NCBI GenBank assembly: GCA_047495785.1
Contig: JBLDXI010000024.1
Coordinates: 2,294,001 to 2,358,000, forward strand
Origin: Lepidodermella squamata
Taxonomy: Eukaryota; Animalia; Gastrotricha
Direction: 5' to 3'
DNA length: 64,000 nucleotides
In this document: positions 3,001-63,604 of the stretch, piece after piece
Position numbering within the stretch: position 1 is the stretch's first letter
How the letters are laid out: each line of letters starts with the position of its first letter
The notes under the pieces: model-generated
The model's database searches: none
What the model was told of the DNA's origin: nothing
The model's input: only the letters and a program-made list of their open reading frames with translations
Translations under genes and position numbers: made by a program

Positions 3001-6000
3001 AATTAATCAATCATGATTTTTACTCATATAGCCTAGTTTTGATTTTTTCGACTAAATATAATTAATTAATTAATTAATAATTTTGGAGTGATAAAGGTTA
3101 GTAATATTAGTTAATTAGTAGTAAATTAATTATTATTAAAATTAATTTAATTATTAAATTATTTTTAACAAATTTTGCCTTGAATGCTACTAACCATATC
3201 GTTTTGTTGTCTGCCTTTGTCTTGTTTTGAATGCTTTTTTGTGATGATTTGTTCGATTGATTGGAAAAAATGCTGAAAAAGGTCGAAATTGAAACATGTG
3301 TATGATATGCATATTCAGTGCTCGGCGACATGTGGCACTGGTGTTCAAGTGCGTCGCGTTGTGTGCATCATCCGGCGCCAGGGCCCGGGCAACCCGAGCC
3401 AGGCCGTGCCGCAACGCTGCCCGGCTAATGTTCGGCCGAGTCGAACGCGGCGATGCCAGGCGGCTGAATCGTGCCCGGAATGGGACGCTGGTCCGTGGAG
3501 TGAGGTAAGATTTCATCAAGGATCATCATGAATTTAGCTTGTAGTCAATACCTAGACGTTGAAAGTTTTCGAGAATCTCGACTAAGTTCCACAATGACCG
3601 GTGAAATGCTTCAGGTGAAAAATTTTCCAGGGTAGAAAGAAGTGACTTCCATAAGGTTCTCAATTTAATTTTTCGGTGAGACTTTTTTTCATCCGACCTA
3701 AGTCCAATAATTTTATCAAAAATCCAAAATTGTGACAAAAAATGCATCTGGGAATGAATTTCCACCCATCAAATGCTTTTTATTAAAATCTCCTGAAGCC
3801 CATCGCCAATATTCATCAAGATTTGTACCTTTGCTGAGCTTTTCTGGAGGTTTCCCCTTTATCTCCATCGCTGTTTTTGATGGTTCGCTATGGAAATTGA
3901 AGCTGACTAACACAAATCCAATCTCATTCGAACTTTGGAAAAATTCACGTAGCGAAGTTCGATTTTGGCAAAAACTGTGACAAAATAGAGAGTATAATTT
4001 TCTAGCTGTTGAATGAAATTAGTCACGTGACGAATGGAAAAAGGTTCCCATGGATTTTGATTCGAAGCTATAGACCTGAATGATTCTTCAATCCGCCTTA
4101 AATATCACGCCTAAAAACTCAAATCGGTAAATCGAAAATAAGTAAAATTAAATTAAATAGTCCATATTCAGTGAAGGGGAAATCTTACTGCGATACCAAA
4201 TTTCATTTAATTCAATACCTAACCTAGTTAGGTTCGTTAGGTTAGGGTTATGTTAGGGTTAGAGGCTGGGTCTTAAAATTGGGAAATTGGAACTGATTGG
4301 AATAATTTGGTACTGAATTCCCTTCCCTGAAAAAGGTCGCCGATCTCAGGGGGAAGTGAATAGATATTTGAATAAATTTCGGAAATGCTCAAGGTTCATT
4401 TCAGTTGCAAGAAATTAAAGGATTTTATTGTATCTCAAGCTGTGATTTTTCAATTAAATCAGCAAGCAATCAATGTTTTATTTCATTCTTTAATATTGAA
4501 GTAAATTATAACCATAAATAGGTCATCATTTCCCAATTCTATTTTCCTAATTTTATAGCGGATTGAACCTGTAAAAAAACTGGGACATGACGAAAATGAC
4601 TGAAAATTACCTGAAAATTCGGAAAATGGTCGAAACTGTTGCTATCACGTGTCACCGGTCATTTCATATATTATTTCAATTTTGCGTATAAATCGGTCTT
4701 ATGTTTTGTTGATTATTGCAACCCCAAATATTACAGTGTCTCGACCCGTGCGCTCCCGATGCGAGCCAGTTGCGGACGCGAACAGTCACGTGCCGGCGGC
4801 CTGACGGCTCGCAGACGGTCGGCTGCGCCATTCAAAGCCGGCCGAAAGACTCTGAACCATGCCCTGAGCTATGCGTCGCCCCACTGTCGCAAAAGCAGGC
4901 GGCTGAAAGTGGCGAAGTCGCCGACAACAGCCAAGATGCGAGCGGCATCGTAGAGCGGACATCGTCCTCGTTAATCGGACGGCCGTCACGGTTGAACGCC
5001 TTCGCACCGTCGCCGCCATCCAGCAGCAGCATCAACATCAAGCCGCGGCGGCCTATCAGTCGGAAGGACAGTAGTAGTAGCAAAAATAAGCCGAGGGCGA
5101 AATCGAGGACATGATTGTGTTTTTAGATTAGACGAGATGAAATTGAAAAAAAATATTGAAATTTTTTGCATGTTGAGAAACCGAAACAGTCGAGGTATCG
5201 AGGCACGAGCAACAGGAACTCTCATAACACTCACTCTTCTATGTGCTGCAAAATCCGGTTGTGTGTCATATAAAACATTATTAATATTAATTAATATTAC
5301 ACTTTTTAGCGGTAAAATTTCATTACTAACAGAGATTTTTATCAGATAAAAAATTGAATATTATTGTAATAACTAACCTAATAAATTGCAATATATAACG
5401 AAATTAAAACTACCGCTCTAAAAATTAATTAAAAATTAGTAAAAAATATTTTACACGCTTTTAATGGATCTCAAAGAAAGCTAATAGTCAACTGCCCTTT
5501 AAATTTCAGCAAAACACTGCGCGAATTTTTTTCTTCTGTTATTTGAGAAAATTTTATTTTTTCTAGGCTAGATTATTATTTTTTTTGCATGCATTTTTTT
5601 CTGTGCGCATCGTCGAGTGTCGTAATTTTGTTTGTTGTTTGAAAAATCATTCCCTGACCTGCGCAAAAACAACTCGCAGTATGAAAAAAATACCTGGAAA
5701 TCGGTATAATAATATTTTTCGGCACTTGACGATCGTTAAATTTAGTTTTAGACGGAATGTCCTTCTCCCTCATGCAACCGAGTGTGTATTATTTAATTTC
5801 TAAAATTAATTAAAGCAATTATTTTACTTAGGCTTAGCCCGAAAAAGTTTAAAAAATATGCAACTATTATTTTATAAATGTCATAATAATATTATTATTT
5901 ACCAATTTATTGATGTAAACGAGAAAAAATTTGACGAAGCGAAGGTGATTTCAGGTGTAATAAAATGCGATTGAAATTATTGAAAAGATTTGATGAGTTT

Positions 6001-9000
6001 TTTTTCTATACGATTTTTTCGTATTCAGTGTTCAGTCACGTGCGGGATAGGACATCGCCGGCGAGTTGTCTACTGCGAACCTGGCGCGTCAAATCACAAC
6101 ACGGCGATATGCTTCAACCACCTAAAACCAACCGAAGTTGAAACGTGCGTCGAGCCGTGCTGGTCGGAAATTTCCACCCCGTTACTACCCGTTATCCCGG
6201 CTACGACAACCGAGGCTAACCTCCGATTCGAATGGCTCATCGGCGAATGGCAGCGCTGCTCGGCCTCTTGCGATTTCGGGTATCGGCGGCGGAAAGTTAG
6301 CTGCGTGGGAAAATCGACGCGAAATATCCGCCTTAATAATAATAATTACCCAGTTTCGGACTCGTTGTGCGAGTCGCGTTATGGTGGCAAGCCAGCGACT
6401 CAAAAGGCGTGCTATGAACGGCCGTGTAACTCGACGTGGCTAGCGGGTGAGTGGTCACCCTGCTCGGCGCAGTGCGGCTACGGCTCGCAGCATCGCCTAG
6501 TCACGTGTTACAGCCTATTGAAAAATGCAACCTCGCTAATACCCGTTTACCGTGCGGTTTTCAAGCCGAAATTAGCCGAGGCGTTGTGCGATGTCAACGA
6601 ACGGCCGCATAATTTTCGCCAGTGTCGAGTTGTGACGTCGTGCGTGATGAATACGACTGCTGATAATGAGGGACATATCGGTTGGGCGACTGGGCCGTGG
6701 TCGAAGTGCTCGCGGTCGTGTTCTTTCGGCGTGAAGCAACGCCAGGTGACGTGTGTTGAGTTCTTCCCGGGCGAGAAACGCCGCGTCTTGGCCGATGTCA
6801 TTTGCAACCATTTGAATATCACGCGGCCGGAGAGCAACCTGCGGTGCTTTGAAAAAAATTGTAAGTGACCATTTGTTTTATGAAAATCAATGTAGCTTGA
6901 ATAACGATAAATCACAACTATTTTCTTTTACTTTTAAATGTTAACAAAAATATTTGAATTTTTACTAAACTGATCCAGCAAAAAGCATTTTCTATCGCGA
7001 TATACCCAATAAAAATTGAAATTTACCGGAGGGAATAAAAAAAATCCGAAGATTAATGGCTTGATAATCTCCGAATTTTCACAATTATTGAGAATTTTAT
7101 CTAAATCTATCTAAATGTTGTCCTTATCATATTTTCCTGTATTTTCATTATTTTCGCTACATTTTAGGGACACTGTAATACAGCGTGTCCAAGAAGTTGC
7201 GCAACTAATTTTAAATTTGGCAAATTTTTGTAGGAAATTCAACTAATTTCTAGAAAGTTCTACCGATAGGAAGTTCCAACTTTAATCCGCGATTTAACCG
7301 AAGAAATAAAAAAAATTGCCTGAGAAAGCCAGGAAAACCCCGATGATAACTGGTTGGGTAATTTTCGGTATTTTAGACCACATTTTTCCAGTGACTTGAT
7401 TACTATTCTCGTGAACTTTTGAATTTTTCTAAAACTTTTCTAGCCATGAGATGCTACTCCATCTCTCATTTAGCGTTTCTGAACCCTTTTCCGTGTATCT
7501 TCTTTGCTTGCATTACTTTTGGGACAAGCTGTAGCTCCGAAATCGCTACAAAAAAGGAATTTTTCAAGTATTTATATGGCTCCTTATTAAAAAATAATGT
7601 TATAGTCGAAGTGATAGGTAGATCCACTAAGCGCCGCTAGTGTAACGGTATCATACAAGATTCCCATTCTTGTGACCCGGGTTCGACTCCCGGGCGGCGC
7701 ACTCATTTTTGCAATCAAAAAGGCCCAAGTTAAATACATTTTGGAACACCTGGATTAAGGTGGATTTGAACAGCCCTTGTGGCCTAATGGCAAGGCGTTG
7801 GACTTCTAATTCAAAGATTGTGGGTTCGAGTCCCACCAGGGGCGAAATTCTTTTTGTAGTCACCCTACTTCTATTTTTCTGCTAAAAATCAGTAGTGATT
7901 AAAAAAATTGGCACCCCCGGCGGGACTCGAACCCGCAATCTTCGGCTTAGGAGGCCGACGCCTTGCCATTAGGCCACAGGGGCTGCTGATGTCTAGCCAC
8001 CCTCTTGATCAGAATCTATATAGCTTGAATCGATTACAGCCTGATTGCAAAAACATTTGCTCCTGGCGAGGCTCGAACTCGCGACCTTCGCATTACTCAG
8101 CTTGCATGCATGCACTGCTTATAAGTACGACGCAATAACCGACTATGCTACAGGAGCACACAAGAGAATACTTCCTTAGCAGGCTTAAGGCCAGATTATT
8201 GGAATTTGAAAATTTCGAATTTCTTAGAAAATTTGGAAATTTTCTTAAAATTAATGGTTGTTGATAAAGTAAATTTTAGAGTATTTTCCTCTTTCGTTCA
8301 TTTCATTTTGAAATTTGTGTTTCAGGTGTTGCCAAGTCGTGTCGACACGCGGCTAAAACCTTCAACGCATCAGTTGACGGCTACTACGAGCTGGCGTTAT
8401 CGAAATCTCGATTCACCCGCAACTATCAACAGCTTTACCAGCAAAGCATGGCCAATTTGGTGCCGCAACACGTCGAAGCCTACTGCCGGGGCATGAATAA
8501 ATCGCTGAACAAAACGCCCAAGGAATATCTTGATTTAATCGATTTGCAACATCAAAAAATATCATTCCGGTAAATGTGAAATTTTTGTGAAAAATTGATC
8601 TGAAAATTTTAATTTTTTTTAAAATATTTTAGATGCCTGAATAGCCAAAACTCAACAATCGTCTTTCATCGAATCCGTTTCATACCATCTGCTATGATTT
8701 TATCTTGTGAGTTGATTTTCAAATTTTGTCTCAATTTTCAATTTTCAAAAAATTTGAAAATTTAAATTTAAAATTAAATTTTATTTAAATTTGAAATTTT
8801 TTGATAATTTTTCAGTCAGCGATTGGGCGTACACGAATGACGAAATTAGGCCGAATCAAGTCGAAATTTCAACCCGCCAAGATTTAACTTTCGAACTGTT
8901 ACCTAACGGCCTTCGCCTATTGGATTCCTCACCCTCGCTAAACTCGACTGAAAGTCGAAGAAGAAAACGATCGCTTTCATCGCCCTTCCTTCAATTTTCG

Positions 9001-50260: not shown

Positions 50261-52994
50261 GAAGAGGACAATAAGACTTCGAATGTTTTCACAATTTGGA
50301 AACAGTGTTTCGGGATATTTTCAAGGATTTTCACCAGAACAGTCTGATTAAAATTTGTATTATTAGGGGTTTACTGCTGGCAGAACCGAATTTATTTGCT
50401 TCGCTGCCTAATACCAAATATGTCGAATAATTTTGCTTAAGATTAATTGTACTTCACCATTTTAGAGGAAATTTCGGTTCGCTGCGGTCAGCTTTGGTTC
50501 TGCGATGAGATGTTCTGTTAATTTGTTCAAGAAACCAGATTTTCTTGTATTTATTCCAAAAATAAAGATGAACGAAGGTGAGAGTCGTAAAGCAACTTTT
50601 TCCAAGTGGAACAAGCGGATTCTTGAGAGATTTTGATCGAAATCTTAGTTGATTTATGTACTGCCTTGTGAACTTTCATAAAATATGTTGCTGCGATCTT
50701 GGCAATATCGATATATTGGCGTTTTCTTTTTTGGAGCCTTACGCATCAACACTGCTGCGCGTGCCTGAAAATTATAATTTGTTAGAATCGTGCTTTTACA
50801 AATTTATCGGCCTAGTTTTCAAATAATAACCTGTAAATTGTCATCCAGCAAGCGAGTATTTCAAACTTTTTATTCGATAGAGTGATTTATCATGGCTGTT
50901 GCCTTGGTTATTCTTGCTGTGCTATTCATATCAATCGGCCATACTTTGGCGGCGCCTGAGTTCAGGCGATGTATCTCACGCATGGATGATAAGTTTACAG
51001 GGTGTAAATCGACGTGTTCCTTCTTCGATGAAGTTCAGGTGATAAAAGGTTTCAAGGTTTCGAATATTTCTAAATTTAATTTATTCGCAGCTGGGGCGGC
51101 CGCGGGCAAGTGAAGTGTCTTGCACAACAGGCGTAAAATTTAAATTATCCGAATTTACTCTATTCTGGTATTAATCTCCATTGAACAGTCAGTGCGAAGC
51201 TGCTACAACCCAGGAAAAGTTACGCTGAGATGCATTGCCAACAGTGAAAATTGCTGGAGCGATGAAATACCGGTTAGTCTTCGGAAATAATTTCTTCAAT
51301 ACGATTTAACCATTCGCCTTTTTTCCAGCATCTCAGATTTATTGGCAAGAAATTTGGTCCGCGTTACGAAGACTGCCGCAAAATATCGGCAAACCTAATA
51401 GTTTTGTGATTACTATAGAGATTCCTTGTAACACTATTGTCTTCCTATAGAACTACCCAGCACATTTTTGCCAAGATAAATCGGGCAGTTCAACCTGTTA
51501 TCCGATCGACATTGCATGTCCTAATGGGACGGTGAGAATTTTTAAGATCTACCTTCTATTTTCGCCTAGAACATTTTTCTTGCAGACGCTGGCTTCATCG
51601 GTCAAAACCATGGCAAGATGTTTGAAAAAGCGAGGCGGTAAAAGTGGAACTTCTCTGAAATTGGGTCAATTTTATAACTTGTTCGATAATGTTTAGTCGC
51701 ATCGACTGATTTTTACCCGCATGTGCGTTGTTTTTCAAAAATCGATCGTTCTTTTGCTGGCTGTAAAAAAAATCCGACAGGCTGCGGTGTTGGTGAAACG
51801 GGGGTGAGGAGTTTTGTGGAATTTGTATAACGTATACTCAATATTTTTGGCTTTCCAGGTGTATAGCCAGGGTACCTACATCGACAAGGCACATTGTTCA
51901 AAGGGCGTTAGTTATTCACGTCATTATTCAAAGCCGTCAATAATTTCTCACCACATATAGCCTGTTGCGTTGTGCAAATCATCTGCTGGGTACTTATGTC
52001 GTGGACGGTGCAAATCGCCGATGACCCTGGTAAGTAAGAGTGCCATTGCGTATCAGGACTGACGAATTGTCTTTACCAGGTCTCCGGATTTTCAAACTAC
52101 ACAGATTTCAATTCGAATTACGCCGAGTGTCTCAAATACCTGGCTACATTCAAGGTGGGATCTTGATAGCTACTAGGAACATTTTGTATTATGTTTTTCA
52201 AGCCACCTCAATCTTCCGCCGGACCCCGGCAATGCCGCGTGTATTTACCGTTCGACAGCGATATATCAATGACCATTCGATTTCTCCAGTATCGACAGTT
52301 GGTTACGGCGATTTCTCTATCGACAACTCAACTTCAGCCCGAGGAAGGAGCTCACTCTACGTCAACGGCGGCAGAGTCGAAATTCCCAACGTTATATCCT
52401 ATGGCAATGAGTTCTCGGTCTGCTTTTTCTACAGGTAAATTAAGATATCGTACGAGCTGTGAAGTAAACGTTTATAAATTTTTAGGGCTGACATGCTGTC
52501 ATCAATGTCATCAGTGCCCATATTGCGGGCCGAAAATCCCCTGCGACTGTCACGTTTATTTTGAATTGTTTATTAAATATTTTATATTAAATAATAATAT
52601 TGTTAATCGGAATAATATAAAAAAAATTAATTAGCGACGTTGATAGCAACGGGGCTGCGGGGCTGCGGGGTTGCTGGTCCTTTCGCGGTTTATCGTCTCC
52701 AGCTGTTCCAAGAGGGTTTAACTCTCACGTCTGCCGTCTACTATTGCTGAGGGTGCATGTGCATTCTTGTTCGAGTCTGTCTTGATCATTCCATTTAAAA
52801 ACAGGGTTGGTTGACAAATAGCGGCTGTCGAATGCTTCAGGATGAGTATAGGACAGCGATCATCGATGACCTATTTCTCCCTTCTCCGATCAAGCCCTAG
52901 CTAAAGCCTGCCAACATCGATCATACGCTGTAGTTTGCTGGTTCTCATTACCTTCGCATGTATTGCTTCTACCCATAGATATTAACTTATTGCG

Positions 52995-53718
52995 ATGATG
53001 AGTTCACTCGAATTGTTCCTACGCGGGCGTGTGTTTCGCAAGTCCATTGCTAAGCAGCCGATCGAGCCTTCCCTGATCGCCAATGTCGACATCAAGGCCC
53101 TCTGTGAATGCGCCGAATCGTTGCCAAATCTTGACTTGCGAACCTCAGGCCAGTTAATTTATTCTCTTAGTGTCACTTACAGCCTGAAAATTGACAGGCT
53201 GTTTCACGATGCTAATGATGCTTCGTGCATTTTACAAGTAGATATGTCTAGACGGAGAGCGGAGCGTCCCGATACGAACACCTATCTGGCGACCGCTCTT
53301 GTTCAGCTTGGTTGTGCGGATATTTCTGACGCTATTGCCTCGCATATGGTAAGCTCGCAGTTATGAATTGTTCACCTAATTCTTTGGTAATTATTTAGCC
53401 GCTTGAAATGCTACCGAGGTACAAACTGAGATTGAGTCTGTTAGCGTACAACCGTATGATGAATCTTTGTTTCCGGCTGGCTCGCACATTTTTCACAGTT
53501 TATTACGACTTGACGATGATAGCGATCGCTTTTTCTATAATCAATTATCTTCCCTTGTTGCCTCGAATAATCTCAGCTTCAATGACGTCGTGAATAATTT
53601 AGATCGTAAAAACGTTTCGAAAGCGTTCTTCGGCTTATTATTAGCTGTGAAAAATGAAAAAATCCTTGTCAATATTGAAGGTTCTGAATTGATTATGTGC
53701 GCCTCTCTTCATGTGTGA
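52995..53718 (+). CDS. Miniature Rad21/Rec8-like alpha-kleisin (N-terminal domain + C-terminal winged helix), transposon cargo; 1-nt frameshift as given
   Basis: Exon 1: VDIKALC...LRTSGQLIYSLSVTYSLKIDRLFHDANDA. Exon 2: LSFNDVVNNLDRKNVSKAFFGLLLAVKNEKILVNIE. Intron 53349-53398. Confidence 0.8.
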
Positions 53719-53908
53719 TTTTGATTTCAAATGCGAGTAATGTTGAAACTTGCCCTCACGAAAAATGTGGATGTGTTGTAATTTTGTTAAATTGTTCAAG
53801 ACTCGCCAGTTTCACCCTAGCTGCAAAATAAATATACGATGGTATTTTCGTTTGATTTTTGTTCTATATTACACGTCTACAACCAGAAGGAAAAAGCACC
53901 AATCTATC

Positions 53909-54337
53909 TCAATTATTGTTTATTTTATTCATTTCACGAGTGTTTTTTGGCCTGACAGCGTTATCACAAGGTTTTAGAGAAATTGTACATCCAGCTAGTT
54001 GAAATCGAGGTAACGGGTCCCAAGTGCTATAATTTACAGCCGGCCGCTGCTCCCAGTCAATAATGTCATCTTCGTCGATATACGTCACAACGGGTTGATC
54101 ACCCAATGCTGAAAATGATAAAAAGAAAATATAATTTGAAACACGTAATTTTTATAACAAACCTCGCTTTGTTGCCGCCGCTCGCTTTTCCGCAGATTCT
54201 ACAGTAGCGGCAGTTAATGCCGCTTTTCGCAGTCTATCGCGTTCTTGATCCGCGGCTATTTTCTCAGCAGAGCGGTTAGCGCGATACACTCGCATTCTAA
54301 TTTTGTGTTCAAGCAATTGCTCAGGCGTTCTTGGCAT
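53909..54337 (-). CDS. Transposon cargo ORF2, small protein with a charged helical (STPR-like) N-terminus
   Basis: MPRTPEQLLEHKIRMRVYRANRSAEKIAADQERDRLRK...; a phase-1 GT-AG intron at ~54110-54161 joins it to ALGDQPVV... Confidence 0.5.
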
Positions 54338-55268
54338 TTTTTCAAAATTGCGATTGAAAGAATAATTTTCCTATTTTCACGTGTACTTCGTTTTTTTCAA
54401 TTCAATTTCGGGACGAGAATAGCAACACATGATTTTATCATCGATTGACACCTGGAACAGCTACGGCGTGAGCGAGTGCTGTTGTGCGCGATCTGTAGAA
54501 TAGCTATTGTATAGCCACACACATCTTCTATTCATTTCAATTCACGCCTTATTGTCAGCGTCAACCAGCTGCATTGTTCTTACTTTTTTCACACCTTTCC
54601 GTGGTTTTCCGTGGTCGAATTTTGGTTTCGAGGCCCGAGCGCACCTGTTCGTGTTCGTGCGTGCATCTACTTGTGTTTGCGTGCGCGCTAGGGATGGATT
54701 GTAACGCGCCTGTTTACTTATCAAACAGCGGTGTTATTTAGCCGAATCAAAAGGTTGACTAGGTGTTTGATCTATAATCACCGCTATCATAGCAGCGGAA
54801 TCATCGCCGCCATTTACACCTGTTAGGCGCCGGCTGTTTTGTAGTAGCAATAATATATTAAAATTATACGCCAATCAGCTTCGACTCATTGTCGAAATCA
54901 TTGCCCTCGTTTTTCGATTGTAGATTAATACATCGCTTCGCGAAGAGTTACTGCTATACGTGCGCGGTCCAAGCAGTATTATTAATTCTCTCGCTTTCCG
55001 CGCCTCAGATCTCGTTTAATTGAATTGCGCTTGCGCGTATTTGTAGGCCCATGCGCCAAAACGCTTGATATTTCCTATCCGCTCGCTAAATGCGCTCATT
55101 TTATCAACCAAATTACCTAAGTTGCGCGCCCAATTTTTTTATAAATTCGTTGTTGCGCTCGCTTCGACTCCTGTTCCGATTTATCTATTGCGTTAATTAG
55201 ACGCCTTAATAAATATTTTTATAAGTATCTTTTTCATCCTTAGTTGTTGTTGATTATCCACCTTAATT

Positions 55269-55859
55269 ATGGCCTATTGTTTGCGGGAGCGCGCAACTTT
55301 GAAGAAGCCTGTGATTTATGGCTCTGCCGTGACTGAATTTCGGCGCGTCGACGATTACTTAAAGAAACAGCAACAAGTGCGGCTCGTTCGCGTCCTTGAA
55401 CTCCAGCTGTTCGATCCTTTCGCTGTTTTTGATCGCCGAAAAGAGATGCTATTCCTGGCCAATCAAGTGGTTTTAGCACTCGAAACCCAGCTCAACCGCG
55501 ATGCAGCTAAGCCAATGCTGAATCAGCTCAAGGTCGTAGCCCGTCATTGCGTTTTTCCCGCAGGTAAGTTGGCTCAGCAGGAAATTTTTAAAAGGTGGGT
55601 AAACGGTGACTAATGCGCGATTACGATTAAAATTTGTGAATTTTGTAGCGAGAAAAAGCGCTACATTCGCATTTCGGCCGAACATCTTGCAGAGATATTC
55701 CGTCGTTTCGATATTGTCGTCTCGCTTTTCGCTCTGAAAAGAAACACTAGAACCAGCCTTGTTAATAATGTATCTTTCTCTATGAAAAAACCCATAATTG
55801 AAAACTCGCCTCAGGCCATTTGCAAGGCTATTATTCGTCTCAATTCAGTTCGAGTCTGA
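55269..55859 (+). CDS. Transposon cargo ORF3, unknown protein
   Basis: ATG ORF; intron 55595-55648 (phase 2) continues the frame EKKRYIRISAEHL... to a stop at 55857-55859. Confidence 0.5.
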
Positions 55860-55919
55860 AATCTGTTTTTTATTTATTTTAGAATCTCCTCATTTTATTT
55901 ACATATCTATATCGACGTT

Positions 55920-56357
55920 ATGTCTTCGGTGTCTAATAAGCGTCCCCGTCGTAAAGTTGACATAATGGAGCGAAAACTGAAGGCGCCTCCCAGTACCCCC
56001 AAGCAACGGCGACAGCCCCGCGTTGTAGCTGATCGCCAAAAGTCGCCATGCAAAAAGGTTGAAGAGGTAATTTCACTCTAAATTCACTCTAAATTTTTTA
56101 ATTGGCTCTGTTATTTTATATTTCAGCATCCCGATCATCGCATCCACCCGAAAACACCTACAACCGACGAGGAGGTGGCGGCCTATTACGATCTCGAGCC
56201 TCGCGTGCTTATGAGCAATCGATACCGCCTTGACCCCGATCACAATCGCAACAGCGGTGCTGCCAAGCAGGAACGCCGTATTTTGTTTCGTCTGTTTTGC
56301 TCGAACATGGGCAAAATACAACCAGCGCCGAAACCTAAGCGACTTTTTAAGAAGTGA
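55920..56357 (+). CDS. Transposon cargo ORF4, small basic protein
   Basis: MSSVSNKRPRRK...STPK...KSPCKKVEE|HPDH...KPKRLFKK; clean phase-0 intron 56067-56126. Confidence 0.55.
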
Positions 56358-57415
56358 TACTTTTGATTTTCTGATTTTCTGATTTTCTCGATGCTTCATG
56401 TTTAATAATGCTCTTCATCGCAATCGTTGCTTCATCGCAATATTGTACTTTCGGATTAATATTCGTAAAATACGAAATAAAAACGCATGATTGGCCTGCT
56501 TTTATTTGTTCCCTTTTTGGAATAAATTGGGAAGTAGTTAATAGCGGTGCCTGATGATTTTGACCTCGAAACATCAAACAAAAGCAGCAATTGGATTCTA
56601 GGCAGGAATTATATTAACAGAAAGGCTGAGAAAGAGCTGAGTTTTGATCGGAGGATTCAATGATATAGAGCTCATAAAATTATTAATATCAATTTTAACG
56701 TGTCGAATAATTTCACAAAAAACGAGGTTGCTTTACGATAGCCGAGCTAAAATGCTAATTCGTAGGAAATCGGAAAGCATTTATCAATGAAACCAGTCGA
56801 TGCGAGAATATGGTGGTTATAACATAATAAAACGCGCAATTTTCTGCTCGAGCACAAGAATTGGTTATCAAAGACGAGCTCATAGAAGGGCATAGGAATT
56901 ATTAAAAAATATCAAGGTGCCTATATACGGCCATAAATTATCGACATATAGGTAGGACGGGTTAGACCCCAAATCATTAAGGCGGCTGGCGGCTGAGAAT
57001 GTCATAAATAAAATCAAAGAAATCAAAGTAATATTGCTAACTTATTTAGGGACAGAATGATTGACCATCTTTCTTGAAAAGCGGCGAAGTAATATACAGT
57101 ATAAATATTATATGAAAGCACAATTAACGTGATTTGCAAGACGTATCCTCAGAGAGAGCAAATCATTAAGGCGGCTTTACATAAATTTATTGCCCAGCAT
57201 CGATTAGCATCGTTTAGTGGGACTAGTTAAGACCACAAATAATTATCATACAGTCGTGGAAACACACGTATAATATCCCAAGATTTGATATCAATATAAT
57301 TGGCGAATCATAATAACAATTACAGCGCCATCGCAGATGAAAGAAAATAATCAGGAAAAAGATGAAATATTAAGACGGCTATATTAAATATATAACAATG
57401 ACAGAAACAAATATA

Positions 57416-60264
57416 TCACATATCACCATCGCAGGTGAAATCAAACGGTTCCACAGAATCGTCTGCAGTGAAGATCACCGCTGCCCTGCCTTCGGCTACG
57501 TCGTCCTCGACTCGAGTCGCCAGAGTAGCCAGCTGGATGTTGTAGAGCCTCATCAGCTGCTGACTTTCGTCGTTGTTGACGCGGCATACCTGGTTCGACA
57601 ACTGGTTTTTGCCGACCTTGTTCGAGAGCTCGACGTTATCGCCCGATATAGCCGACAGATAAGTGCCCTCCTGCCTCAGCCTCGCCAGACGATCGTGCGA
57701 ATGGAACTGGAAGATGTGGAGGTAAGGAGTATAGCATCCACTTAGTCGTCGAAGAATGTTGGCAAAGTCATGGAAATCGGCGGGTGTCTCGGGGATTGGC
57801 TTGGAGCCGTCGCCACAGCGAATGACAGCGAAAAGCTGCTTGAAGAGAGCTTTTGCCTCGCCAAATTGCACCAACTTCGTTTGCATGGAACTAGGTTCCA
57901 GCGAATTTAGCATGCCAGCATCGACGCAGAGCTGAGCCAAGTCCGCCGGGCTGGACTTCTTGTCGAATATAACATTTTTCGAGACTAAGAAATTGATGAG
58001 AGGCTTCTTGGCGCGGCCGAACGAAGCAAGAAGATATTTAGCCTCCCAGCCTCCCCGGCACAGTTGAAGAGGACACCAAGACTCCTCCGAGTCGAAAACC
58101 ACCTTGAAAAGAGTGTGGTGATTCATGTGGTGCACGGCGATGTCCTCTTTCACGAACGCGATTTCAGCCTTTTTATCGAACGATCGCAAAAGGCAGACAA
58201 TTTTCGATTCATAATCTTCGATTTCTTTTTTCATGAAGAGGAATAACTAAAAAATTAGGTAAATGTGAGGTAAATAAGCTGAAAGGACTTCATTTTCTAC
58301 TCACGGCTCGTAAAAAAAGAAACGCGATTCTCAGAGCAGCATGCAGCGTGCATAGATAGATGTCATCGCTGTCGACATCGAGTAGCGAATCAGGCAAGGG
58401 TCGCTTTGGTTTCCGGTCCAGCTCTGTGATGAGGACATCCAGAGGCTTGGCATCATCAACGAAATTGAAGGTGCAGAACGGACAGGCTAGAGCATCGGTA
58501 TAGCTCGTGCCAACGATTTTGCAGATGGCAGGCAGGTCGGCGCATAGAGACCTGTCCGCAAAATTCTCAGATAAATATTGCCATAAAAGCCAAAATTTTT
58601 GCTTACAATTTAACGGTTAACTTAGTGCCATCATCAAGAAGAACACCGTTCACTTTTATGGCGTTGAAATCAGCGAAGACAGGCGAGAGGAGCTCCAAGT
58701 TGTGACGAGTCTCCTTGCCCATCAAAACAGCAGCCAGATATTCGGTTTTTGTAGTAACACGCGTCTTCTGATGATGAAAGGCGAAATTCATTCGATAATG
58801 AGGATCTTTCCCAGTTCGAAAGACGGTACCATCACCTAGAAAAACCGACATATTCAAGATGAGAGACATTTAAGAAAGCTTAAAGGGCTCATCAAAGATT
58901 ATATAGCCAATGAAAAGTCGGCAACTATTGAAATTATGAATAATACCTTGTACTCGGCAGACTACTGTGTTGGTGTTAGGTCGAGGAACAATTCCGTTTC
59001 GGAAGAGATAAGGCATCTGCTTGCTGGGCAGGATGAACGCAGCATTGCTAAAACCTTCGACCTCATCGGTTACATCCCTTTCTGGCGGAACCACCACGCT
59101 AATCGGCAGGATAGAGCCAAGCTTCTTCTTTTCAGCCAAGAACTCTCGCTGAGTAATCTGGCACCAGGAGGTATTGCATTGGCGCAAGGCATCTTTAACC
59201 GAGAGGTAGCGAGAGGAATAATCGCGCATCACACTGAAGTTGACAGGGAAAAGAATATAATAATAGCATTTAAAAAATATCAGCAACTTACTCGCGCAGG
59301 GTATTAGCTTTAGCATCGGCATCGCCAAACCATAACTTCCTCGCTGGTATTCCACCATCGAAATTGACCTAGAAGGAACACATGAGACACATTAATTCTC
59401 TTCAATCTGGCAATGATTTAATTTTAGTCAAACCTGGACAGACAATGATTTCACAGGATAGAAATCGCCGCGGCTTTGTACATCATCGAAGATCGACTGA
59501 ATTGGTCGAATCAATTCACTCCGATGCCTCAGAGACCTCTTCTGCCGAGACAACTGAGCCAAAGGAAGTTGAGCTTTCTCGGCAGTCAAATGGCCAACAT
59601 GCCGCCCATTCGGAGCAAATTTCTTAAGGCGTAGCACTTGCGCCCGAGCAATCTCATACTTCCGCTTTTCAGCAGTGAGTTGAGTTTCTATCAAACAACA
59701 GCTGCAATTAGACATTACTTCCAAAAATGCTAATACTTACTGAGACTATGAATTGCTTTCGCAGCGTCATCTTCTAGTGGCCGTTTCACCGCCACCTTCG
59801 CTGGGGTAGCAACGGCAGGAGGTGCTCGGTTTTCAGAGGTCACTAGATTATAAAGTAAGTCAATGGAATCAAAAGCAATTAATAAGAAGCTAACAATTTC
59901 TAGAGCTAGCCTTTGGCGTGGCATGAACGGAAGGAATCGCTTTCTTAATAGGAACTGGTAATAAATCACATGTGAGAAATGCTAGTAAGAAGCAAAGCAC
60001 TCAGTTTAAAAGTCATACCAGAGCGATTACCGAAAGCAGAAGTAAGCAAGGGCGAACCCGCTAGCATAGGCGATCTTGGTTGTGGCGAAGCACCATTGAG
60101 AACTAGCATGAAACACAGTAAGTTGAGTTGATACCACTATAAAATAATCTGAAAAAAGCCTAACCAGAAACAATGCGAGGTGTGCTGCTACCATCAGTAG
60201 CTGAGGTTGAAGGCGTAGATAGCTGCTTCAGCAAGCCTGCCGAAGAATGGCCCCAAGTAGACAT
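57416..60264 (-). CDS. RAG1/Transib/CMC-like DDE transposase, multi-exon, apparently intact
   Basis: Spliced product has, in order, GDGT, GKET, CADLPA, CPFC, LHAALRI, YTPYLHIFQFH, SGDNVELSNK. All core introns splice in phase with no stops. Confidence 0.85.
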
Positions 60265-62447
60265 GTTATTAACAGGCTAAAACAAATGAGATTCTTCTTA
60301 ATGAAAGTATCATTGCGACTATCATTGGTTAAAACAGTGGAAAGATGGTAAAAGAATGCACATGCAATGTCAGCAATACGAGACGTGAGAGTTGAACCAT
60401 CTTGCTCTTGCAACAGATGGAGGTGATAACCCGCGAAAGAAACAGCTTGCCCGTTGCTATTAACTACGTCGTTATAATTTTTATATTATTCCGATTAACA
60501 ATATTATTATTTAATATAAATTATTTAATAAACAATTTAAAATAAACGTGACAGTCGCAGGGGATTTTCGGCCCGCAATATGGGCACTGATGACATTGAT
60601 GACAGCATGGATGGAAACAATTCTGGCAATTTGATGTCTAACGGCCAATGCAATGGGAATTCTGAAATTCCTCTGTCGATTTCGCATCACTCTATCGAAG
60701 GAGATCAGATTAATTATCAAGTGATTTCCACGTTGTATCAACCAGTCAATCGAATTAATCACACTTCGTCTGCTGATAACTCCGAAACGACTGGGGAGAA
60801 TTACACCCAAATTTGTGTTGTAGTGGGCAATGGGAAGATCTCCGTTCAAGATAACGATGTAAGTTATTGCCATTGGTTTCAGCGATAAATCTTCGAATTC
60901 GAATGTTAAATAGGCTGTAGATCAGGAATACCCATCAAACAGCTCTGTCTTTGTCTCGAATTGTCCCTACGTTATCGGTTCCAATTTCAAGGGCCACATT
61001 GATGAAATTCTCATCTGCGATTTTGCGTTGACTGCCGATGAAGTCGATGCGCATTACGCTGGGCCTGTATCGCTTCAAAACGCCGGCCTCATCCCACCAG
61101 CCTTGACGCCGCGACCTCGCTACAGCGATACACCGGCTCAACCTAGCCCAAACAATTCGTGTGGTCACAACAAATACTGGAATGCCAACGAAGATTTGCT
61201 GCCATCTGTTCAAATTGTCGGTGGCTTTGACTCAGCTGAAAATGAGTTCCCCTGGCAGGTAAAGCTGTTATCTTACTCTCAATTTTGTTGAACTTGAATT
61301 TTCATAGGGTCTTTTGCTGACGCGAGTCGAAGGTCGCACAAGGCCAATTAGATGCGGTGCCGTGGTTATAAGCAACCGATGGGTCTTTTCTGCGTAAATT
61401 TTCGAGTTTCTAGTTGCCGATTTAAGGATAACACTTTATTTTCCAGGGGCCACTGCTGTGTTTCAACCACGCCCATCATGTGAGTTGATTTTTCATTTTG
61501 TACCCACAGCAGTTTATAATTTTGTATGACAGTGAGCGAATTATCTTGGTTGGTGGCAATTATGGCTGGCAGGGCAGTCTCAATAAGACTCTAGCGTTGT
61601 ACAGTACGGTTCGGACAGCCAAACAGGCCATCCTTCATCCCGACTTCAACGAAGATGCCGATCCGCTCATTTTCAGCGACATTTGCCTCCTCGAATTGAA
61701 CGAGACGATCCCACTGGACAGCTGGGCTATACAGCCAATTTGCCTGCCTAGCAGCTGTGCTGACGTTTGCTCGCCTGGTGAGCTGGTTGCGATCTCCGGT
61801 TATGGTGCTACTAGCAACAACGGATTCACGACAAAGCGCCAGCTCAACAACGTCGTTCCAGTCATTGACGATGCGCTTTGCGAGCAGCGATACGCGGCTT
61901 ACGGGTTTAAAGATGGCACCATGGCCGAGTTGAAAGCTTTTTGTGCGAGCTATGACGGCACTGGCGGGGTTGATACCTGCGGCGGTGATTCCGGAGGACC
62001 AGTCGGTTGCTTCAAAAATGGTTATTTTGTCCTTCAGGGGCTGACCTCGACCGGCATAGGATGTGCTGAACCCAGATATCCTGGTATCTATACCAATGTT
62101 TGCAAGCTATTGGACTGGATCAACAGCAACATGGCGAACCCCGGGGGATCGAACTAAGAATATGCTGTTCGCTGTTGCGATTTATTTAAAAAGAATCTTA
62201 TAATCTTGCGACTGGTTATTTTCGCAAAAAATGCTTACTATTTAAATTTAAATTCCAATTTAAATAAAACCACAATACAACCGCCGAATATTTTATTTCG
62301 TGATTCATGGTTTTTGTGAAGTTTAATTCGTAGATTGCTCTCCTCTATAAAAAAATTGGAGATCAATAAATTATAAAATGGCATGAAAATCGAGTTTTGA
62401 GACGTCGGTTTTCGCTGGTTCGCTGTTTCGAAAATGAAAGAAAAAAA

Positions 62448-62680
62448 TGGGTCGAAGGGAGATTCGAACCCTGGACCGCTTGGCAATTACTCAGACGGCG
62501 AGACCACTGCACAACAGAACTAGGTAATGGTAGTCATCCTTTTCCGTCAATTTTATACACCAAACGAACGATACAGATAAGCGTTCTCAACCAATCTCGG
62601 ATAGGAAGGGTCCTGTTGTATAGCGAACTCAACCCAGGTTTCTAACCCTAAAGGTCCAGGGTTCGAATCCTCCATTCACC
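62448..62680. other. Divergent pair of tRNA-like (SINE-head or pseudo-tRNA) sequences
   Basis: GGTCCAGGGTTCGAATC B-box on the minus strand (~62460-62477) and on the plus strand (~62653-62669); poor acceptor stems. Confidence 0.4.
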
Positions 62681-63604
62681 CGATAACTTTCAGTTTTTTG
62701 AGAGATGGCAAAGTGAAGAAACTACGCCACAACGAAACAACCAAAAATGCCGTCAAGAACTAGCTCCGGTTTTTCTCTGCAGCTTCTGTGTTCCACCGTC
62801 CTTAATCGTCAAGACATACATCTCCGCTCTGCGGTAAAAAGCTAATTTCACATAATTTTACAGGTTTGGAGAAATTGCTTTTTAGCAGCGGTTATACTAT
62901 TATTTGGCATCAATTTATTTTCTGCCGCCCCAGGTTTGCGCCAGAGTCCACTAATTTTGTTGGGTCTTAGGCAAATAAATTTATCTTTTAACTTCGCTTG
63001 TCGTTCGATTTGACGGGGATTTTCCTGTTTATTTGATTTGCATTTATCGGTTATTGGTGACCCTCCGGTGTTTATTTGTGCTACAACTCAGCCAAAAAAT
63101 GGTTTTACACTTTCAACTCAATGAATATTCTCAATGCGGCAGGGATAAACTTTTCAATCGATCTCCATATTGAACTCAGACAAAAAAAAAGAAAATCACA
63201 ATCGATTGTGTGACGTGTGGCATCTATTTATAGTATTTGCACTAAAAAATGAGAACCGATGACTTCGCCTTTTTGCTGGGCAAATTGGGCCCGCTATGCC
63301 AAAAGTATTCCACTCTGACAAGGCAAACAATAATGCCTAGTGTAACGTGAAGGTGAAGCTGATTGTAGGGGTCGCCAGCTTCCGAGTATTAAATGTTTAA
63401 CATTTCAGGCTGAAATTTTGACCGTGACTTTTTAGAGCAAGTTCATTGCCTGGAGTGACCCCGGGATCGCGTGAAACCGAATGAAGGCGCGTGACAACGG
63501 TGCGTCGTGAAAAAAATAAAAAATAATCTCATTCATTGCGTTACACTTTTTTAAATTTAGTGTTTTTTGAAAATCGAATTTTCACTACTAATAAAAGAGT
63601 GGCC

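Follow-up and report, generated by a model that had tools for sequence, protein, structure and literature searches.

The segment at positions 52995-53718 of the window (the whole stretch of 64,000 nt of Lepidodermella squamata DNA that was analysed) encodes, in two pieces, apparent counterparts of the two conserved ends of a Rad21/Rec8-type kleisin, and it does so inside a DNA transposon. The question raised by this locus is whether a mobile element carries a purpose-built miniature kleisin, as the initial annotation had proposed, or whether the small size of the gene has another origin. Both peptide strings on which that proposal was built are present where it had placed them. The answer given here, with high confidence, is that the segment is an internally deleted, frameshifted copy of a ~515-aa kleisin-like gene belonging to a cut-and-paste transposon family. 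The proposal thus divides in two: a Rad21/Rec8-type gene does stand between terminal repeats, whereas its "miniature" form is a deletion scar.

The kleisin identity of the two pieces was assessed with Pfam, whose curated cut-offs are 23.1 bits for Rad21_Rec8_N and 22.7 bits for Rad21_Rec8. In alpha-kleisins the helices of the former contact the SMC3 neck, and the winged helix of the latter contacts the SMC1 head. The exon-1 product, read from an ORF (52995-53366) with an ATG start and an in-frame stop before it, matches Rad21_Rec8_N (PF04825) with 25.7 bits (E=1.4e-5); the matched residues correspond to profile positions 30-91 of 110 and include the LRTSG..L motif region, while the ~29 first profile positions (the first helix) are unmatched. 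The C-terminal piece (53413-53715) matches Rad21_Rec8 (PF04824) with 16.1 bits, below the cut-off, and E=0.0067. The profile comparison that had been put forward as a check on the kleisin assignment supports it above the cut-off at the N-terminal end, with a weak match, below the cut-off, at the other. Among language-model (Atlas) clusters, those nearest to the N piece are all Rad21_Rec8_N, at 0.83, which is a lead only, and those nearest to the C piece are Cnd2, CNDH2_C and Rad21_Rec8, all kleisin C-terminal winged helices, at 0.94 with 190 shared features. The AF2 single-sequence models of the two pieces are too poor for use (pLDDT 47 for the N piece and 55 for the C piece, the latter with a helix-helix-helix-strand-strand order), and Foldseek with the low-confidence C-piece model returned no significant match, the ScpA C-WHD (4i99_D) appearing at rank 30 with E=2.6. 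That both ends of the gene have a match specific to kleisins, each on its proper side, goes far beyond chance.

The search for relatives of this gene gave little. When 1.84 billion representative proteins were searched by phmmer with the exon-1 product, the sole match was a repetitive junk protein with Ric8-like repeats (P0001), and no Rad21/Rec8 protein was retrieved from these representatives or from the PDB. Comparison of the two kleisin pieces, and of two transposase exons, with the sequences of the PDB yielded chance matches only (a nicking enzyme with E=0.25; ULK1 with E=0.2), and exact-sequence look-up of the 123-aa exon-1 ORF and of a 272-aa transposase ORF found no record. The initial annotation had also considered that the segment might be a fragment nearly identical to the host RAD21/REC8; this does not apply, since the phmmer search of exon 1 retrieved no real relative. 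A recent capture of the host RAD21/REC8 gene is likewise ruled out, the sequence being far too divergent.

The element around the gene extends from 52492 to 60609 (8118 nt, 8.1 kb) and possesses both the terminal inverted repeats (TIRs) and the flanking target-site duplication of a cut-and-paste DNA transposon (Table 1). The TIRs are 98% complementary over their first 132 nt, with weaker similarity onward to ~290 nt (to ~52780 in the left arm), and their 40-nt termini, CATGCTGTCATC..., are identical and occur in the window solely at 52492 (+) and 60609 (-). The kleisin remnant begins ~500 nt inside the left end of this TIR-bounded element. Insertion took place 6 nt into a host coding exon (flanks at 52040-52491 and 60612-62157): the upstream host exon ends at 52434 (..TAC AG, then gtaaat), a 51-nt intron comes next, and the following exon starts from 52486. 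Excising the element together with one GA restores the host exon reading, ..FFYR joined to ADGNNSGNLMSNGQCNG.., in the phase of the upstream exon; this supports the 2-bp target duplication and entails that everything between the termini, the kleisin remnant included, came by transposition. The insertion should inactivate this copy of the host gene.

With regard to the host locus, the exons neighbouring the insertion appear by eye to encode a lectin/LamG-type domain (..GHIDEILICDFALTADEVDAHYAG..), and a Pfam Trypsin domain is found downstream in the same gene (61498-62157, E=6e-31). The window genome is that of an animal with introns of ~50 nt, and among the genes of the window are TSP1-repeat genes, one for a cyclase and one with a trypsin domain; long open exons at 93-2126 and 5990-6868 encode thrombospondin type-1 repeats of the ADAMTS type (Pfam E=2e-75 and 7e-41), which point to a metazoan genome. 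Two inverted tRNA-like 3' halves with a GGTTCGAATCC T-arm motif lie 175 nt apart at 62449-62477 and 62653-62681; ARAGORN and Rfam called no tRNA at either place, and these halves may be tRNA pseudogenes or tRNA-derived repeats.

Table 1. Features of the transposon and of the kleisin gene remnant (positions in the window; X1, X2 and X3 are public sequencing runs described in the text)
Feature	Position	Strand	Remarks
Target-site duplication GA, 2 bp	52490..52491 (left), 60610-60611 (right)	.	excision restores host frame
Left terminal inverted repeat	52492..52780	+	begins CATGCTGTCATC
Kleisin exon 1	52995..53348	+	118 codons, ATG; Rad21_Rec8_N match aa 26-86
Intron 1	53349..53398	+	50 nt, GTAAGC...TTATTTAG; absent from RNA-like contig of run X2
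Surviving exon 2 start	53399..53415	+	17 nt, CCGCTTGAAATGCTACC
Frame read after canonical splicing	53399..53593	+	64 residues, off-frame from junction; stop 53591-53593
Deletion junction	53413..53415	+	3-nt microhomology ACC common to both sides; X1, X2 and X3 contig breaks
Kleisin 3' part	53413..53718	+	last 101 codons and stop; winged-helix region, Rad21_Rec8 match aa 50-84
Spacer between kleisin and transposase genes	53719..57415	.	3.7 kb, no recognisable coding domain
Transposase gene (model)	57416..59715	-	six exons, 650 aa, convergent with kleisin gene
Transposase exons	59715-59434, 59368-59292, 59233-58947, 58835-58607, 58551-58305, 58246-57416	-	
Right terminal inverted repeat	60330..60609	-	element end 60609

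Evidence on the complete form of the gene comes from contigs of four public runs aligned to window positions 52300-58299, among them a source-like DNA run (X1), a run labelled "RNA?" (X2) and a run labelled as a third organism (X3). A 1450-nt contig of X2 (contig 10) covers 53024-53348 and 53413-53649 with zero differences; the two matched parts are separated by 888 letters in the contig and by 64 in the window. Since its first match stops precisely at the GT donor of exon 1 and the 50-nt intron is missing, the contig is taken to be spliced RNA. In a second contig from X2, the match stops at 58246 and is followed by the reverse complement of 58334-58305, so that the last transposase intron is missing, which lends support to the RNA nature of the run; with two introns missing, X2 is most simply regarded as RNA. 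The 888 letters amount to 296 codons and position 53413 opens a codon of the C-terminal frame, so that the family transcript is open throughout and encodes 118 + 296 + 101 = 515 aa. Exon 1 of the window is identical to that of the family transcript, and its splice signals are in place, namely the GTAAGC donor at 53349 and a strong ttatttAG acceptor with its AG at 53397-98.

The DNA contigs break at the same place. One X1 contig (contig 2) is perfect over 52594-53415 and then runs into 524 nt of other sequence starting TCGGTTGACC..., whereas another (contig 3) has 279 unlike letters ending ...GTTGAGGCC and is then perfect over 53413-55004; in X3, which is ~95-97% alike, the match of contig 19 begins at 53413 and 126 further letters are not on the window. 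Translation of the loose ends indicates that full-length copies remain in frame, reading PLEMLPRLTPDMTSV past the acceptor and NSATADAVEA ahead of TEVQTEIE. The deleted segment is thus known from its length (888 letters in RNA) and from 30 letters at each edge. These 30-mers from the edges in other copies have no further occurrence in the window, and the lost middle part was thus not relocated locally. Splicing, or passage through a cDNA, is ruled out as the cause of the loss too, the deleted block lacking GT..AG bounds.

By the coding count taken from the RNA, the loss is 888 - 14 = ~874 nt, one over a multiple of three (874 mod 3 = 1), which accounts for the frameshift of the window copy; the 3' part therefore lies in a different frame from exon 1, and normal splicing gives 118 native plus 64 nonsense residues, 182 aa in total. 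Both kleisin domains and the long linker are in one frame in the family transcript and are not in the window copy. With 14 letters in place of the 888 of the RNA, and with co-linearity and near-identity otherwise, the window copy has the features of an internal-deletion derivative. Nucleotide 17 of exon 2 was thereby fused, at the ACC of 53413-53415, with the final 101 codons, and the product of the window copy would comprise the N-terminal kleisin domain only, followed by nonsense, the linker and the SMC-ring-closing winged helix being gone. Internal-deletion derivatives of DNA transposons usually originate by abortive gap repair or by slippage at microhomology, and short microhomology at the junction is a signature of the former; either route may have produced the present deletion.

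The element is young, as suggested by zero differences from the X1 majority contigs over 822 nt (52594-53415) and 1592 nt (53413-55004). X1 holds the full-length form too, so at least two forms coexist in that run. The X1 contig depth over the element is 266-328, ~3x that of the flank (110), a figure that is indicative only. To judge from the near-perfect termini and the open 650-aa transposase model, the rest of the element looks functional.

Several observations concern variation within the element and its family. In the spacer, X1 depth rises to 565-1127 at 55300-55700 and 56100-56500, against ~300 elsewhere, with several variant contigs, which suggests that these stretches are shared with commoner repeats; an ORF of 114 aa (55269-55613) within the spacer is without a Pfam match, and RNA-like contigs over 56620-57415 probably represent the 3' UTR of the transposase gene. 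Scans of the element for Rfam families, tRNAs and tandem repeats gave no relevant result. A piece of 111 nt within 52623-52735, subterminal to the left TIR (the GGGGCTGCGGGGCTGCGGGG stretch), is absent from one X1 contig, and the two arms of the window copy also differ at that region, which therefore varies in length among copies. Another X1 contig (56802-58092) skips 56802>56959, 57014>57208 and 57255>58092, the last being 836 nt in the last exon of the transposase; it may stem from a further copy at another genomic site, either related or likewise shortened by internal deletion. Fragments of X3 are 93-98% alike to the TIR (52492-52627), to the 3' part of the kleisin gene (53413-53741) and to the transposase (57537-57680), indicating that a diverged family, kleisin part included, exists in a related strain or species.

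A real mini-kleisin of ~217-224 aa (~224 aa in the initial annotation) would be made from the window copy if the assembly had missed one A in the AAA run 53406-53408, where that annotation had placed the frame offset; use of the acceptor AG at 53417-18, with the exon starting from 53419, would serve the same end. Splicing of 53348 to 53419 does leave open a frame of 217 aa that includes the two kleisin ends, and short kleisins can work, as bacterial ScpA demonstrates. However, three runs show that what lies to the left of 53413 is the edge of a deletion and no point error; the acceptor at 53417-18 is not preceded by a pyrimidine tract, whereas the strong ttatttAG 20 nt upstream is intact; and the joint 53348>53419 does not occur in the RNA-like run, where the sole joint is that of the full-length form. 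The two halves are indeed offset after the canonical acceptor, as had been noticed, yet not because of the AAA run, since the breaks lie at 53413-53415; a 1-nt sequencing error in those three A's is excluded on the same ground. The repaired reading "PLENATEVQTEIE" is coincidental, other copies reading PLEMLPRLTPDMTSV... and then NSATADAVEA before TEVQTEIE, and the two-exon product of ~224 aa does not correspond to any natural gene model, given the 888 letters in the transcript against 64 in the window. What had been taken as design, that is, the lack of a STAG/PDS5/NIPBL region and of a separase site in a miniature, linker-less, possibly uncleavable protein, is a lesion: the size results from the ~874-nt internal deletion, which broke the frame as well, and the family transcript has a 296-codon middle. 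A genuine mini-kleisin is, in this light, scarcely credible.

The collapse by the assembler of a locus copy that is truly full-length is very unlikely. Among the X1 contigs listed, none spans the junction in the form of the window, so that the junction rests on the window assembly, and the depth in the bin 53300-53499 is explained by two abutting contigs alone. On the other hand, a collapse rarely yields a clean junction with a 3-nt microhomology inside a segment of unique order, and the absence of the window form is expected from Logan contigs, which drop rare variants, short low-depth paths or bulges being usually removed. The deletion may also be accepted as real and its truncated product considered functional, namely as a dominant-negative protein that would sit on the SMC3 neck and leave the ring open. 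The KP derivative of the P element, itself the product of an internal deletion, encodes a repressor and provides a precedent; moreover, the N-terminal domain, start codon, donor and upstream region of the window copy are intact and identical to those of transcribed copies. Against this, there is no read evidence for transcription of the window copy, a lone young copy in which no sign of selection is seen, and the early stop at 53591-53593, behind which no intron is annotated, would neither promote nor block decay of the messenger. Such a function is pure inference and highly improbable. The internally deleted, frameshifted copy of a full-length kleisin gene is accordingly retained as the best explanation of the segment.

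The second gene of the element is modelled as a transposase with a 1953-nt open reading, zero internal stops and GT..AG bounds at every intron, the last of which is removed in the RNA-like run X2. Its classification was approached by comparison with ProtoRAG, Transib and CMC (CACTA-Mirage-Chapaev) transposons. Pfam searches with all transposase exons and the ORFs of the spacer returned no meaningful match even with E allowed up to 10; a search for homologous proteins with the 272-aa transposase ORF found none, and no RAG1/Transib sequence match was obtained in Pfam or the PDB. The closest named Atlas clusters of the last exon are RAG1_ZnH2/RAG1_C, at 0.92, and CxxC and H-x4-H motifs with RAG1-like spacing can be recognised by eye. 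The RAG1/Transib label is accordingly no more than a lead.

The architecture of the element recalls ProtoRAG, in which a TIR-bounded cut-and-paste element likewise has a second gene (RAG2L) convergent beside the transposase. Unlike ProtoRAG, where the partner is RAG2-like, here the partner gene is a kleisin; and unlike Transib and ProtoRAG, with their 5-bp target duplication and CAC heptamer, the window element has a 2-bp duplication and CATG termini. Considered as a derivative, the window copy is akin to maize Ds from Ac, to KP and other deleted P elements and to deleted mariner and hobo elements, all of which keep the same termini and near-identity and have an internal block gone. It differs from these classical cases, in which the transposase is lost, in that the accessory kleisin has been lost and the open transposase model kept.

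As to the protein itself, the family product follows the eukaryotic alpha-kleisins (Rad21/Scc1, Rec8, Rad21L, Drosophila C(2)M and nematode COH-3/4) in having an N domain, a linker and, to judge from the weak match at its extreme C-terminus, a winged helix, and the full-length transcript (~515 aa with a ~300-residue middle) has their overall layout. It departs from them in its extreme divergence and in being encoded inside a mobile element, not at a host locus; in addition, the window copy has its linker deleted and its frame broken. Both kleisin ends and a ~300-residue linker being found together in the full-length protein, the simplest reading is that it would bridge an SMC pair as Rad21/Rec8 does. 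A kleisin gene as transposon cargo is real and unusual, and its full-length form is transcribed and spliced. The claim of novelty made for it stands, in so far as full-text literature searches returned no paper on a kleisin as transposon cargo.

It is tentatively suggested, as a possibility that is rather less than even, that the full-length kleisin is an accessory protein recruiting host SMC rings on behalf of a RAG1-like transposon, of which the window copy would be a natural kleisin-null allele. Rings so recruited might hold the sister or donor for gap repair, pair the transposon ends, or feed DNA to the transposase via loop extrusion. In Paramecium, a developmental condensin I is required for PiggyMac and binds PiggyMac (10.1101/2025.10.03.680307), and RAG scanning in V(D)J recombination is driven by cohesin loop extrusion (PMC13291235, PMC13190342). 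In both of these systems the SMC subunits are encoded by the host, whereas here the element itself encodes the kleisin.

To sum up, the claim of a purpose-built miniature, uncleavable kleisin is not to be carried forward, because the small size of the gene is a deletion scar. The window copy nevertheless adds independent support for a transposon-borne kleisin and, its transposase being apparently intact, constitutes a natural knock-out of the cargo gene alone. SMC complexes are known helpers of transposase-derived nucleases, as condensin I is of PiggyMac and cohesin of RAG, and an element with its own kleisin would thus make the link between chromosome-holding rings and transposition testable. 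If the accessory-protein reading is true, the mobility of the window copy, either by itself or when kleisin is provided in trans, would be a direct test of the role of the kleisin; and if the deletion preceded the insertion, the kleisin would be dispensable in cis.
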